A DNA stretch of 64,000 bases from Ascoidea asiatica JCM 7603. Taxonomy: Eukaryota > Fungi > Ascomycota. The stretch's first letter is position 1, and every line of letters begins with the position of its first letter. The notes below the pieces were generated by a model. It saw only the letters and a program-made list of their open reading frames with translations. It did not search any database and was not told the DNA's origin. The translations under genes and the position numbers were made by a program. The stretch covers positions 966,654-1,030,653 of the forward strand of contig BCKQ01000003.1 in the NCBI GenBank assembly GCA_001600695.1. The letters are read 5' to 3'. Shown here one piece after another: positions 30,360 to 44,232 of the stretch.

Positions 30360-31079
30360 TTATTTTTGAATAAATTTTGGTAATTGATTTTTATGTTTTA
30401 AATAAATTAAATAATTAATTAAAATTTTATTAATTTTAAAATTTTGAATAAATTGTAAATCTAATTCAGATTTATTTAAAATTGAAGCAAATTTATTATA
30501 TTCACTAAATATACCAGCATATGACCAATTTTGTAAAAAAGATCTAATAATTCCAATTAAAACACCAATTCTATGTTTACCTTTATTTGAATGAATTAAA
30601 ATTGGATAATTTGATTTATTTAATATTATTAATAAACAATATGTTATAATAATTGGATTATTATTAATATTATTTATATTATTAAAGTTATTTATATTAT
30701 TTTCTTTTAAATTTTTTAAATTTTTTAAATTTTTTAATTTTTGAAAATTTAATGGATTAAAATAATAAAATTTTATTGAATTTTGAGATTTTATCCATTT
30801 ATAATATTGATAATTATCTTCTTTATCACCAATATAAATAATTGTTTTTAAATTTAATTTTTCTAAAAATTTAAAATTTATTGGTACTGGATGACCAGAT
30901 CTATAAATTGAATCTTCAACTATAGAGAAATTTAAAGGAGGAACATATAATGGAATTTTTCTTTTTATATTTATAGGTTTAATTATTTTATTATTATTAT
31001 TATTAATATCTGAATTAGTTTTATCCATTTCATTATTTTGAGAATTATAATAAATTTTTGAATCGATCTGCAACTCCAT
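30360..31079 (-). CDS. OCA2: Oca/Siw14-family pseudophosphatase Oca2
   Basis: YVPPLNFSIVEDSIYRSGHP and P-loop HSNKGKHRIG with Ser in place of the catalytic Cys, as in Oca2. Confidence 0.85.
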   Translation of the reverse strand: MELQIDSKIYYNSQNNEMDKTNSDINNNNNKIIKPINIKRKIPLYVPPLNFSIVEDSIYRSGHPVPINFKFLEKLNLKTIIYIGDKEDNYQYYKWIKSQNSIKFYYFNPLNFQKLKNLKNLKNLKENNINNFNNINNINNNPIIITYCLLIILNKSNYPILIHSNKGKHRIGVLIGIIRSFLQNWSYAGIFSEYNKFASILNKSELDLQFIQNFKINKILINYLIYLKHKNQLPKFIQK

Positions 31080-31350: not shown

Positions 31351-31422
31351 AGCTCACTCCCAGGTTCGAACTAGGGACCAACAGATTTGCAATCTGCTGC
31401 GCTACCACTGCGCCAAGTGAGC
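31351..31422 (-). tRNA. tRNA-Cys(GCA), intronless
   Basis: Reverse complement GCTCACTTGGCGCAGTGGTAGCGCAGCAGATTGCAAATCTGTTGGTCCCTAGTTCGAACCTGGGAGTGAGCT folds as a cloverleaf with anticodon GCA and discriminator U. A T6 Pol III terminator follows at 31343-31348. Confidence 0.98.
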
Positions 31423-31907
31423 AAATCTTTTTTCAAGAGCAATTTATTGTCTTTCTATGCATAAAATTATAGTACCCAATGTGTATTAATAATCATCAAT
31501 ACTTTTTTTATTAGTACCATTGTTTTGGTTTCTACAATATCTGGTCAGATGATTACTGTGAGTCCAGTTCCACGGCACTCTTATCATTACATAATCACTA
31601 CGATAATCACTACGATAATCACTACAGAAAATACAGTATGGTTGTTAACCAGTTTTTTGTTATTAATATTTATGATAATATGATAATATGATAATATGAT
31701 AATATGATAATATGATAATGCTATGAATATAAAATAAAAAAAAAAAAGATATATGCACTATTTCATTAGTAAAAGTAAGATAAATAGATATGAGAAATAA
31801 GAATGAGAATGAGAATGAGAATGAGAATGAAATTGAGAATGTGAATATAATATAATATATATTTTGGATATTAGTATAGAAAAATACTTTTTTTGCTTAT
31901 TTTTCTA

Positions 31908-32042
31908 TTAGCTTGTAATTATATTATAATATCTTCTATGACAATTACGACAAACAGCTATGCCTTCTTCATTCCAATATTCACAAAATGGACAAAATGT
32001 AAATTTAACAGTTTGTTGAGTTTCTTCTTCACCACTACTCAT
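31908..32042 (-). CDS. Unannotated 44-aa zinc-ribbon (RanBP2/NZF-spacing) microprotein
   Basis: MSSGEEETQQTVKFTFCPFCEYWNEEGIAVCRNCHRRYYNIITS followed by tandem TAA TAG. AAAATG start context and host-typical codons. Confidence 0.7.
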   Translation of the reverse strand: MSSGEEETQQTVKFTFCPFCEYWNEEGIAVCRNCHRRYYNIITS

Positions 32043-33626
32043 TTTAAAATTATATTTATTTCTTGATATAATGATAATTGATAATTGATAATTGATTGTT
32101 GATATAATTGAATATAAGTAAATATAATGAATATTTATATATAATATGTAAATTGAAAAGTAAATGATAATTTATTAATTAATAAAAGTAAAATTGACGG
32201 GAAGTTGATCATTTATATAATATTTGAAAATCATTTAATATTAGTTAGTATACTATTAACTTTTACAATAAAATTTACATTCATTTACAATTATATTTCA
32301 ATTATTTCAAATTTACATTTAAATTTACATTTAAATTTACATTTCTATCTTCATTTTCAATACAATTTTTATAATATATAAAATTCAATCTCAGAGTAAA
32401 AACTATATTAAATTTCAATAATAAATAAACAATCAAACAAAGGAATTAAAACAATAATAAATAATTTCAAGGATTAAATCGCCTATGAAGATTGTAAAAA
32501 AATAATTAAAACTAGAAAATACTTAGTCAAATATCACATATTACAAAAATCTAAGAGAAATATGTCGTGGGATATTAATTTAGTTGAATTAATCAAATTA
32601 ATTAGTATTAAGTATATTATTGAGTAAGTATATTGAATATATTGATTATATATTGAGAATTGAAGTAATGTAAAAAATTAAAATTATATATACCAAAAGG
32701 GAATTGAAGTAGAAACGTGGTTCCCGAAACGAGAGATGCCTTTCAAATAAATTTCATTTTTAAATAGTTTCTTTAAGTAATAAAGATCTGTCGACATTTT
32801 ATAACGACACAGGAAAAAAGACACCAACTAATACAAGTACTAATATTAGTACTAATATTAGTACTAATAAAAAAAATGACAAAGAGTTGTTTGTATTCGC
32901 TTATTTCAAGGGATATCTTCTCATTTTTTTTACTCTTTACAGCATTTTTCCAAAATCTTGAATATTACAATTAATCTATCACATTATTATTGATTTTATT
33001 ACTATTTTAAAAGAAAATAATAATAAATGAGCTTTTTAATTATCAATAAGCTCCCTCTTTATCAGGGTCTCCCTACAAATATTTCAATTGCAAAAAAAAA
33101 AAAAACATATTTAAACTACTTCTCTCAAAGACTTTCGTTAAATTTTGATTAAGAAAGGATTGAAATTTTTATGAAATTCTAATGATACATTTGTAAGACT
33201 TTTCTGAGACTTTTTTCACCACGGTTTTTATAATCTAAGACAAATTAAAAGGCCCGTTGTAACTTAAGTGTAACATTAAAAACCTTTCATCATATTCAAT
33301 TTCAAATATTCAATTGATGGGTGAATAATTATTGAATTGTTTGAATTGTTTGAATTGATTGATTAATTGATTGATTATAAATGGTGATGTGATTGAGTGA
33401 ATTGACTTGGATTTGCTTTGTGTTTTCAGTGCTTTTCTTGCTTTGTTTTATTTCTTCACTATTTCCTCAGTAGAACAAACAAGTCGGAAGAGGCGCGTGG
33501 TGTGGAAACAAAGAAAATCATAAAAAGTAAAGCAAGACCCGCAATTATGGACTCTACTATAAACTCCCGCAATTATGGACTCTTCTCTTCCACGTGCCGT
33601 TTTGTTTTCCTATTTTTTTTATTTTT

Positions 33627-33635
33627 ATTTGTGGC
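33627..33635 (-). promoter_or_regulatory. Middle sporulation element (Ndt80 site) GCCACAAAT upstream of SPS1
   Basis: Exact match to GNCRCAAAW inside the GC-rich island about 570 bp before the SPS1 ATG. SPS1 is an Ndt80-dependent middle gene in S. cerevisiae. Confidence 0.6.
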
Positions 33636-34202
33636 AGCACATGACCTGTTTTGTAGTTTCTGGGGGCAAAAGCAGCAAAAGCAGCAAAAGCAGCAGAGGC
33701 AGCAGAGGCAGCATTGAAACCATCGCTGGCTCCAAAACCATCAAAAGAACCATCTCTCTTACGCCCTCATTACTCTCTATCCATTCTTATTCTTTGGAAC
33801 AACTTAAACAGTCATTGATTCAATATACAAGAATTCAAATATTCATTCTCAATACCTTCTTTTATATTTTAAATTTAAATAATTATAGCTTTAAAAATAT
33901 ATAAATGCTTTCAAAAATTATCTAATCTCAAAAAAATCATATATCCATTAATATAATTTAATTTATATATATTTTAAAAACTTTTTTTATGCTCACTTTA
34001 CTAAATAATTTTTTAGCTTTATTTTAAAAAAAAAAAATTTTAATAATATTAATATAAAATTGCTAATTAAAATTCTATATATTGTATAAATTTATTATTT
34101 ATTTATTTACTTACTATATTAAATATCAATCAAGTAAAAAATTCAATTCATTTCATTTTTATGTATATACAATATAATTCATTAAATCATTAATTTTTAA
34201 TA

Positions 34203-35313
34203 ATGGAAAATCAAGAAATAAATCCATTTGATAAATATGATATTCATGAATGTGTAGGAAGAGGAAATTTTGGTGATGTTTTTAAAGCGTAAGAATTACC
34301 TTAAAATGATTATATTCATATCATATCATATCATATCATATTATATTATATTATATTATATTATATAATTGAATATCTAACAAATAATAAAAATAATAAA
34401 TTAAATAATAAATTAATTAATATTTAAATAAAGTGTTGAAAAAAAAACAGAAAAAATAGTTGCAATAAAAGTAATTAATTTAGAAACTTCAGAAGATGAA
34501 GTTAATGTTTTAATTCAAGAAATTGCTTTTTTATCTCAATTAAGATCTCAATATATAACTAATTATTATGGTACTTATATTCATGATGTTTCAATGTGGA
34601 TTGTAATGGAATATTGTGGTGGAGGTTCATGTGCAGATTTATTAAAATGTCATAAAAAATTAAATGAAGATATTGTTTCTTATATTATTAGAGATACTTT
34701 AAAAGGTTTAGAATATTTACATTCAGAAAAAAAAATTCATAGAGATATAAAATCTGCAAATATTTTATTAACAAATCATGGTCAAATAAAATTAGCTGAT
34801 TTTGGTGTAAGTGGACAAATTAGTGAAAATACAATTAAAAAAAATACTTTTGTTGGTACTCCATTTTGGATGGCTCCTGAAGTTATTACAAGAAAACTTG
34901 GTTATAATGAAAAAGCTGACATTTGGTCTTTAGGTATAACTACAATTGAATTAATTACTGGTTCTCCACCATATTCAGAATATGAACCAATGAAAATTTT
35001 ATTTCAAATACCAAAAAGACCTGCTCCAATTTTAGTTGGAATTAATTATAGTGAAAGTTTAAAAGAATTTATAAAATTTTGTTTAATTAAAGATCCAATT
35101 AAAAGACCTTCTGCAACAAATTTATTAAAACATAGATTTTTAAAAGTTTGGAAAAGAAATATAAATTTAATTAATTTAATTGAAGAAAAAAATCAATGGA
35201 TGTTAAAACATAGATCTGGTAATAAAAAACCAAGATATCCAATTGAAATTTATAATAGTAAATCTGAAAAAAGTCCAAGAAATCCAAATTATTTTAAAAA
35301 AAAAAATATTTTA

Positions 35314-35373
<60 letters not shown>

Positions 35374-36138
35374 TATATAAAAAATTCAAATAGTGGATCA
35401 AGTGAAGATTATAATAAAGAAAATGATTTTAATTCAAAACAAATAATTTGGTCGTTTAGTGTAAGAAATAAATCATTTAAAAGTTATAATAATAATAATA
35501 ATAATAATAATAGTAATAAAAATTCTTCAAAAGATGGATATTCAGATTGTAAAAGTAGTCCAATGACAGGAATAACAAATTCTGAAGTTATTAGTGCTTC
35601 TACAGTTAAAACAAGTCCAAGTCCACATATTCTTCAAGATTTTGAATTAAATTTAGAAAAAAATCCATATTTATGTTTAATTGAACAAGAAAAAAAAATA
35701 TTATCTAAATCTATAATAGAAAATGGTGATAAAAGTAATGATAACAATAATGATAATGACAACAATAATGATAATGAAATGAAAATTTCAATGAAAAGAG
35801 AAATAAATAGTGAAGAAAGAATAAATAAATCAATATCGGATATTGAATCACCAAAGATATCAGAACTTTCAATTGAAAATGGATATACTTGTGAGAATGG
35901 TAATACTGGCAATTCTGGTGAAAATGAAGAAGCTGATGAAAATGAAATTGATTATTTAAATGATATTCTTTTATATTGCTTTAAAAGAGTGGCAAATAGA
36001 GCTAAAACTTTAGAAACTAAAACAACAGTATTGAAATTAAGAAAAATATTTATTGAATATGAAATGGAACAACCAGGATTAAGTGAAGCTATAATTGAGG
36101 AATTGTGGTTACGTATGAAGTCTTTAAAAGGAGGTTAA
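34203..36138 (+). CDS. SPS1: Ste20/GCKIII-family sporulation kinase Sps1; two exons (34203-34288, 34434-36138), 596 aa
   Basis: Exon 1 encodes the Gly-rich loop (VGRGNFGDVFKA). Exon 2 continues in frame with VAIKVINLE, HRDIKSAN, DFGVSGQ and FVGTPFWMAPE. The C-terminal DYLNDIL...RAKT...PGLSEAIIEELWLRM block is Sps1-like. Confidence 0.88.
34289..34433 (+). other. Spliceosomal intron in SPS1 (145 nt)
   Basis: GTAAGA donor, ATCTAAC branch-like site at 34375-34381, first downstream AG is AAG at 34431-34433. Removal restores the kinase reading frame. Confidence 0.88.
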
Positions 36139-43812: not shown

Positions 43813-44232
43813 TTAAAAATAGTTTTTGAACAATTTACTAATTTCTTCAACAAAATCTCCTTTTATAACAATTTTTTTACTATCTGGTAATACTTTAATA
43901 GTTTTTCTATCTATTTCTGGAAATAATTTTATTAAATCCAATTTTAACAAATTTGAATTTCCTTTAATCTTGCATATTTCTGTATAAACAACTTTTTTTT
44001 TGTATGCTGTATAAATAGGTAAGTTTCCTAAACTTGATCTTTCAATAAAATAGTTATCTGTACCAAATGAACTAGATTTTGATGGTAAATCTTTAGCTGT
44101 TACTTGATCTCGAGATAAAAATATTGGTTCTTTAACACCTATATTTTGAGAACCGCTAACAAATGGTTTAATACCTGAAGCTATACTTGAATTATATCTT
44201 ACAAAACTTTTCATCAATCCACATCTAAACAT
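43813..44232 (-). CDS. IMG2: Mitochondrial large-subunit ribosomal protein mL49
   Basis: YFIERSSLGNLPIY, TEICKIKGN and IVIKGD motifs; mitochondrial presequence-like N-terminus; adjacent to RSA4 as in S. cerevisiae. Confidence 0.88.
   Translation of the reverse strand: MFRCGLMKSFVRYNSSIASGIKPFVSGSQNIGVKEPIFLSRDQVTAKDLPSKSSSFGTDNYFIERSSLGNLPIYTAYKKKVVYTEICKIKGNSNLLKLDLIKLFPEIDRKTIKVLPDSKKIVIKGDFVEEISKLFKNYF

Follow-up and report, generated by a model that had tools for sequence, protein, structure and literature searches.

Does an open reading frame of only 44 codons, which in the yeast Ascoidea asiatica lies in the spacer that separates the SPS1 kinase gene from a tRNA gene, encode a protein that is maintained by selection and, if so, what kind of protein is it? 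Genes shorter than 50 codons are routinely missed, and this one lies in a stretch of 64,000 nucleotides (the whole of the DNA analysed here, referred to below as the window) with a GC content of only 24%. From the sequence of the window, the initial annotation had put forward an undescribed, free-standing zinc-finger microprotein, perhaps of the RanBP2/NZF type. Below, the frame is considered together with its setting, its counterpart in a second Ascoidea species, its predicted fold and its possible relatives.

The reading frame and its setting

The microORF occupies positions 31908-32042 on the reverse strand (31905-32042 with both of its tandem stops) and encodes 44 residues. The ATG stands in an AAAATG context (ttttAAAATGa), and the TAA at 31908-31910 is followed directly by a TAG at 31905-31907, all of which agrees with the initial annotation. 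The cysteine spacing that had been described, C-x2-C-x3-N-x6-C-x2-C, is likewise exact, with cysteines at residues 17, 20, 31 and 34 (codons 31992-31994, 31983-31985, 31950-31952 and 31941-31943 on the reverse strand) and an asparagine at residue 24 (codon 31971-31973). The first four residues (32031-32042) are followed by an acidic stretch formed by residues 5-7. Upstream of the ATG the open frame of the window continues into what reads as Ile/Tyr/Asn-rich junk. There is no in-frame CTG codon in the microORF or in its A. rubescens counterpart (see next section), and the reading is thus independent of the way in which the clade decodes CUG.

The position between a tRNA-Cys gene and a divergent SPS1 gene is also as first described. 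The tRNA-Cys(GCA) gene (31351-31422, reverse strand) is the downstream neighbor on the same strand, at a distance of 486 bp, and the two-exon SPS1 gene (34203-36138, forward strand) is the divergent upstream neighbor, its start at 34203 lying 2.16 kb from the microORF. Microsatellites are present on either side, (ATGAGA)n and (AATAT)n at 31790-31859 on the 3′ side and (TTGATAA)n with a 10-mer array at 32063-32134 on the 5′ side, and no tandem repeat was found inside the microORF, which therefore does form an island of complex sequence among repeats. It also forms a small GC peak, with a GC content of 0.23-0.27 compared with 0.12-0.20 alongside. In the 20.3-Mb genome the microORF is single-copy, also as judged by read depth, and a paralogue search of that genome with the single sequence and with a two-species profile returned no other locus at E≤10. 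The microORF is identical in a second strain (X3), an identity that is uninformative because divergence in the vicinity is only ~0.4%, with approximately six SNPs and three indels over 1.65 kb. Two other organisms, B and C, gave no alignment over the microORF at 80% similarity. The gene lists of both Ascoidea genomes hold no model at the site, and look-ups of the exact products of both ORFs found nothing on record.

The frequency with which such a frame would arise by chance was estimated using a third-order Markov model trained on the intergenic DNA of the window, from which 20 Mb were simulated. ATG-initiated ORFs of at least 40 aa containing CxxC-x10-CxxC appeared at a rate of 0.05 per Mb, and those containing the looser pattern CxxC-x6-20-CxxC at 0.25 per Mb. 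The latter rate corresponds to a few loose look-alikes per 20-Mb genome, and hence the motif alone is no proof of a gene. Codon usage is suggestive. Consistent with the earlier remark that host-preferred codons are used, the codon log-odds score of the microORF is the third highest among the 69 intergenic ATG-ORFs of at least 30 aa in the window; gene status is not decided by this rank. The first rank is taken by a real gene, a 139-aa ORF at 43813-44232 on the reverse strand, which fell under the 150-aa threshold for listing; it has the best codon score in the window and is an ordinary gene for an Img2-like (PF05046) mitochondrial ribosomal protein, with a counterpart in the corresponding position in A. 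rubescens.

Regulatory sequence in the 2.16-kb spacer adds little. TATA-like elements had been offered as support for the gene, but 32 TATA-like heptamers are seen where 27.8 are expected, and these elements carry no weight. The single MSE-like core of each species lies closer to SPS1 (~550 bp) than to the microORF (over 1 kb away), and such cores occur at chance frequency. The proposal that the microORF is co-regulated with SPS1 is neither supported nor refuted.

Conservation in Ascoidea rubescens and selection on the protein

The best database relatives of the proteins encoded by neighboring genes of the window are those of Ascoidea rubescens DSM 1968. Identity is 60% for OCA2 (30360-31079) and 83% for the kinase domain of SPS1, which indicates that the host yeast is quite distant from A. 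rubescens. When the 44-aa sequence was compared by tblastn with the 2.5-kb spacer upstream of the A. rubescens SPS1 gene, one strong match was obtained (L008:8262-8378(-), where L008 is the A. rubescens locus; E 3e-17, 61.5% identity over 39 residues). The counterpart ORF, L008:8274-8381(-), contains 35 codons and encodes 35 aa. All four cysteines and Asn24 fall in the same columns in the two proteins, and most of the aromatic residues are kept. There are 24 invariant columns in total, which also include Phe14, Thr15, Pro18, Phe19, Tyr22, Trp23, Gly27, Ile28, His35, Arg36 and Tyr38.

The A. rubescens ORF is nine residues shorter. Its ATG, in a poorer context with a T at −3, aligns with residue 5, such that the N-terminal four residues are absent from A. 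rubescens, and its stop comes five codons early, at the position of residue 40, the coding of the C-terminal tail (residues 40-44, 31911-31925, reverse strand) not being conserved. The ends are therefore free, with residues 11-39 (31926-32012, reverse strand), which hold the predicted Cys4 zinc ribbon and its flanking aromatic residues, as the constrained unit.

The tRNA-Cys gene, the microORF and the divergent SPS1 gene form a block that has the same order, orientation and spacing in both species. In A. rubescens the tRNA-Cys(GCA) gene, detected by ARAGORN at L008:7714-7785(-), lies 489 bp beyond the ORF. The interval from stop to tRNA (31423-31907 in the window and L008:7786-8273 in A. rubescens) measures 486 bp and 489 bp, respectively, and its sequence is microsatellite-rich and at background similarity. 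Downstream of SPS1 the gene order is identical in the two species, with genes for a lectin, HEM13, Img2, a WD40 protein and so on. On the tRNA side synteny is broken. OCA2 adjoins tRNA-Cys in the window and is on another scaffold in A. rubescens, where the tRNA-Cys side is adjoined by a metacaspase gene (L008:5864-7489); the OCA2 locus of A. rubescens contains no homologue of the microORF.

A forced alignment of ~950 bp places the microORF in sharp relief. The ORF is 69% identical and the tRNA 90-98%, while the remainder, on both flanks, is 46% identical, which is background for AT-rich DNA. In blastn the microORF ranks above every other block of the spacer (E 1e-16), and besides the tRNA it is the only alignable island. 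Among the 34 codons that align, 12 are the same in both species, a further 11 show synonymous differences only and another 11 show nonsynonymous ones, and the differences at codon positions 1, 2 and 3 number 7, 7 and 17, respectively (binomial P 0.011). The resulting dN/dS is 0.12 by NG86 or 0.22 by LWL85, values that come from a comparison of two species in which dS is saturated. The sense frame is the only one that is open across the segment in both species, and it encodes proteins with 66% amino acid identity; antisense frame 0, which is nearly open, shows 34% identity. Such a substitution pattern is the one expected of a translated, constrained protein under purifying selection and not of a regulatory element or a decaying fragment. 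A very slow decay of the A. rubescens copy, with its shorter ORF, poorer start and early stop, is improbable but conceivable.

In A. rubescens an in-frame TAA precedes the ATG by six codons, the intervening sequence contains no AG, and neither ORF contains a GTAAGT- or GTATGT-like splice donor, which argues against a spliced exon. That the microORF might be a decayed fragment of a larger gene is opposed both by the evidence for purifying selection and by the absence of a paralogue. Thus, as far as can be judged from comparative sequence, the microORF is very probably an unannotated single-exon gene for a microprotein of 44 aa (35 aa in A. rubescens), and the initial idea of a free-standing, undescribed microprotein gene gains from the synteny and low dN/dS in A. 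rubescens the comparative backing that had been called for.

The alternative that there is no gene at all, and that the segment is either a chance ORF or a conserved noncoding element linked to the tRNA or to SPS1, is in our judgment unlikely. It would be in keeping with the few loose CxxC...CxxC ORFs expected per genome and with the oddly constant distance between ORF and tRNA, but it does not explain why the frame is open and all ligands are kept in a segment whose flanks are at background similarity, why differences are in excess at third positions with a dN/dS of 0.12-0.22 or why conservation is so much higher in the sense frame than in the antisense frame. Moreover, no Rfam family covers the microORF; apart from the tRNA, the Rfam search gave a single chance match, which is below threshold and overlaps the microORF 3′ end.

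The second-best conserved block of the SPS1 spacer is a GC-rich island at 33420-33830 (core 33672-33720), ~480 bp upstream of SPS1, with a GC content of 0.39-0.47 compared with 0.24 for the window. This island carries a (GCAGCAGAG)-type repeat and has 23 consecutive bases that are identical in A. rubescens (L008:9524-9570), where they lie ~430 bp upstream of SPS1.

Predicted fold and relation to known zinc fingers

An AlphaFold2 model computed on the two-row alignment has a mean pLDDT of 75.6, with residues 11-40 at 83-86, and contains two short strands, formed by residues 14-16 and 23-25. A Foldseek search of the PDB with this model gave weak matches, all with E≥0.45, which is no surprise for a chain with ~30 ordered residues. 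At the top are fingers of the RanBP2/NZF type, namely ZRANB2 ZnF2 and HOIP NZF1 (rmsd 0.8 over 24 columns), and the other weak matches include the fingers of RanBP2 and Nup153, TRABID NZF1, MDM2 C4, RYBP, TAB2 and Npl4, as well as the FUS ZnF and the ZRANB2 ZnF2-RNA complex. With VIA-align, MDM2 C4 (Z 3.8) and the TAB2 NZF (Z 3.6) are followed by archaeal and eukaryotic eL40 ribbons, all at Z<4. The nearest shapes in the ESM Atlas are Zn_Ribbon_1/3 modules at the N termini of prokaryotic proteins (query-based TM 0.63-0.74), and the language-model neighbors are small zinc-ribbon proteins. The safe statement from these models is that the microprotein is predicted to be a two-knuckle Cys4 zinc ribbon, a fold of which the RanBP2/NZF finger is the eukaryotic form. 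In the model, residues 11-39 would fold into the two-knuckle ribbon and hold a single Zn2+ via Cys17, Cys20, Cys31 and Cys34.

Three groups of known ribbons invite comparison. The prokaryotic zinc ribbons (PF13240 Zn_Ribbon_1, PF13248 and PF12773/PF18912 DZR) have the same CP-x-C ... C-x2-C arrangement with 10 residues between, and they supply the best Atlas and language-model neighbors; they are usually N-terminal modules of longer, often membrane-associated bacterial proteins. Profile scores against them are 11-17 bits relative to cut-offs of 25-27, and homology is not demonstrated. Specifically, the window protein is sub-threshold for PF13240 (11 bits compared with 25) and for PF18912 (16.8 compared with 27), and the A. 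rubescens protein matches neither. Pfam scans of both orthologues gave only such sub-threshold generic zinc-finger matches, with no RanBP, RPB12 or ArfGAP domain. The second group, Rpb12/Rpc10, eL40 and eS29, subunits of eukaryotic machines, belongs to the same size class (44-70 aa) and consists of single Cys4 ribbons whose role is docking onto a larger assembly. Two of these, eL40 and eS29, are among the weak structure or sequence matches, with no significant match in sequence; in contrast to the microprotein, which is acidic and found only in Ascoidea, the members of this group are basic and universally conserved. The third group, the RanBP2/NZF fingers (PF00641; ZRANB2, Nup153, TAB2, HOIP, Npl4 and MDM2 C4), resembles the predicted microprotein in having ~30 residues and four cysteines around one zinc ion, and it has the very same spacing, C-x2-C-x3-N-x6-C-x2-C. 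In statistically weak structural matches, the predicted ribbon aligns with solved members at an rmsd of 0.8-2.6 over 24-36 residues. However, these fingers sit in large proteins, whereas the microprotein stands alone.

A ribbon of this kind could bind nucleic acid, either RNA, as ZRANB2 and FUS do, or the ribosome, as a mini ribbon resembling eL40. Such a function, the RNA-binding form of which had been raised in the initial annotation, would fit the presence of the ZRANB2 ZnF2-RNA complex, the FUS ZnF and eL40 among the structural matches and the weak sequence similarity to eS29/uS14 around the second knuckle. All of these matches are weak, though, and both orthologues carry a net negative charge, about −2 and −3 by count. 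ZRANB2-type RNA-binding fingers carry an Arg-Arg pair, and the inter-knuckle loop of the microprotein, Asn-Glu-Glu/Met-Gly-Ile, is devoid of it. Because of this acidity and this loop we rank RNA binding low, and nucleic acid binding of either form strikes us as quite unlikely.

The RanBP2/NZF assignment itself, and with it the suggestion that the microprotein is a stand-alone finger serving as a ubiquitin decoy or adaptor, has some points in its favor. The spacing is exact, and HOIP NZF1, TRABID NZF1, TAB2 and Npl4 are among the best structural matches. However, PF00641 does not match either orthologue at E≤10 (its gathering cut-off is 27 bits), and a genome-wide PF00641 scan that returned five candidate places did not return the microORF locus. 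RanBP fingers encoded elsewhere in the genome all have the W-x-C signature; the microprotein does not and instead has a conserved Trp three residues after the second Cys. The initial annotation had placed a Phe in the position of that tryptophan, two residues before the first Cys, but position −2 is Thr15 in both species, with Phe in the window protein at −1 and −3; across the two species, position −1 is Phe or Tyr. An hhalign comparison with the four RanBP-like fingers of the same genome reached only 43% probability over 20 columns.

The residues needed for ubiquitin recognition differ as well. NZF domains are defined by a Thr-(Phe/Tyr) motif, in which Tyr is allowed at the second position, and by a hydrophobic residue inside the second CxxC; both features together bind the Ile44 patch of ubiquitin (PMC11372445). 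In the microprotein the defining Thr after the second Cys is replaced by Glu in the window protein (Glu-Tyr) and by Asp in the A. rubescens protein (Asp-Tyr), and the second CxxC reads C-R-N-C and C-Q-N-C, respectively, with Asn, preceded by Arg or Gln, at the hydrophobic position. The microprotein thus shares the spacing, and probably the fold, of the RanBP2/NZF fingers, its nearest solved neighbors at weak scores, but demonstrable membership and the ubiquitin-binding signature are absent, and a role as a stand-alone NZF or RanBP2 finger acting on ubiquitin seems very unlikely.

If the predicted ribbon is not a canonical ubiquitin-, Ran- or RNA-binding finger, what might it do? Six conserved aromatic residues on ~30 ordered residues exceed the need of a mini-core, which suggests a hydrophobic docking face and a partner-bound protein. 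This face would comprise Phe14, Phe/Tyr16, Phe19, Tyr22, Trp23 and Tyr38, together with the His-Arg that follows the last Cys. The microprotein may accordingly be pictured as a small zinc-stabilized protein-binding module, a subunit or adaptor that would dock on a larger partner. We have low confidence in this docking role, which would resemble that of other tiny Cys4 subunits. Taken as a whole, the account that we consider likely is that of a genuine gene, apparently restricted to Ascoidea, whose residues 11-39 would form a one-zinc ribbon that may serve as a noncanonical partner-docking module.

Range of the family and its significance

Searches outside Ascoidea found no homologue. An exhaustive phmmer search of 1.84 billion protein representatives revealed none, and a word-index protein search gave no candidate. 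In the PDB, neither the single protein nor the two-species profile found a sequence match below E 0.01. In Saccharomycopsis crataegensis and four other yeasts the SPS1 locus contains no homologue of the microORF, and the upstream neighbor of SPS1 in these five yeasts is an AGE1-like BAR-PH-ArfGAP gene. Literature on zinc-ribbon microproteins of yeasts or of Ascoidea yielded nothing relevant. The family appears, from these sequence searches, to be restricted to the Ascoidea lineage, which is a lower bound on its range, as small ORFs are rarely called.

Several candidates were considered and set aside. Three phmmer hits with E-values from 7e-5 to 5.5e-4 are multi-repeat Cys-rich proteins and not homologues. 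One protein matched by phmmer, P0003 (121 aa), has three tandem ribbons of the form CP[FY]C-x3-N-E-x-[GT]-A-L-x-C, which come near to the first knuckle and loop of the window protein; it was rejected as a homologue and is read as convergence of a common motif. A metagenome profile scan gave four matches, all of them radical-SAM enzymes in which only the CPFCEYW stretch is aligned, and these were rejected as chance. The PDB matches to the KIAA1045/PHF24 finger, eS29 and eL42 rest on Cys.

The A. asiatica genome contains other fingers of related spacing. The initial annotation knew of no free-standing yeast member among RanBP2/NZF fingers, a statement that is weakened by the presence in this genome of further short ORFs that encode a finger and stand alone. 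One is a 45-aa ATG-ORF (L006:1450-1587(+), equivalent to G000:C6:202062-202199) with the pattern W-x-C-x2-C-x3-N-x6-C-x2-C, which scores 18.9 bits with PF00641 (cut-off 27) and 19.6 bits with PF13240 and is not accompanied by any long ORF within 1.4 kb in either direction. Another is a 38-aa ATG-ORF (L005:1471-1587(+), equivalent to G000:C22:132945-133061) with the pattern W-x-C-x2-C-x11-C-x2-C and a sub-cut-off PF00641 score of 21.5 bits, which stands alone in its locus. Both are unrelated in sequence to the microORF. The bona fide PF00641 protein of the genome is a 961-aa open frame (L003/L004, G000:C5:705830-706459(-)) in which two canonical RanBP2 fingers, scoring 48.6 and 37.8 bits, are combined with an RRM-like region; we take this protein to be Nrp1-like.

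That the microORF is instead the relic of a larger gene, either a RanBP2-finger protein or the ArfGAP finger of the AGE1-like gene that precedes SPS1 in other yeasts and in which the pattern W...G-[IV]-x-[IVL]-C-x2-C...H-R likewise occurs, is highly improbable given that the microORF has no PF01412 match, that six intact ArfGAP genes (two of ~1140 aa) are present elsewhere in the genome, that the BLASTP match to the ArfGAP protein has an E-value of 6.2 and lies outside the finger, that the orientation is opposite, that the genome holds no paralogue at E≤10 by sequence or profile and that purifying selection speaks against decay.

The microORF is missing from both Ascoidea annotations and from the 1.84 billion protein cluster representatives, yet the comparative evidence shows that it is maintained. 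For now its practical impact is modest, pending evidence of expression and of a partner. A predicted Cys4 zinc ribbon that stands alone in a eukaryote and lacks detectable relatives, it offers a clean, testable case for studying the origin of orphan miniproteins and the partners to which they bind. A more far-reaching version, to which we give only a small chance, is that the microprotein is the founder of an Ascoidea-restricted family, forms a fixed unit with tRNA-Cys and SPS1 and is one of a larger, lineage-specific set of zinc-finger microproteins that serve as small regulators, in this case possibly of sporulation in concert with SPS1. At a more general level, the finding suggests that a hidden set of zinc microproteins may exist in this little-studied and extremely AT-rich yeast lineage.
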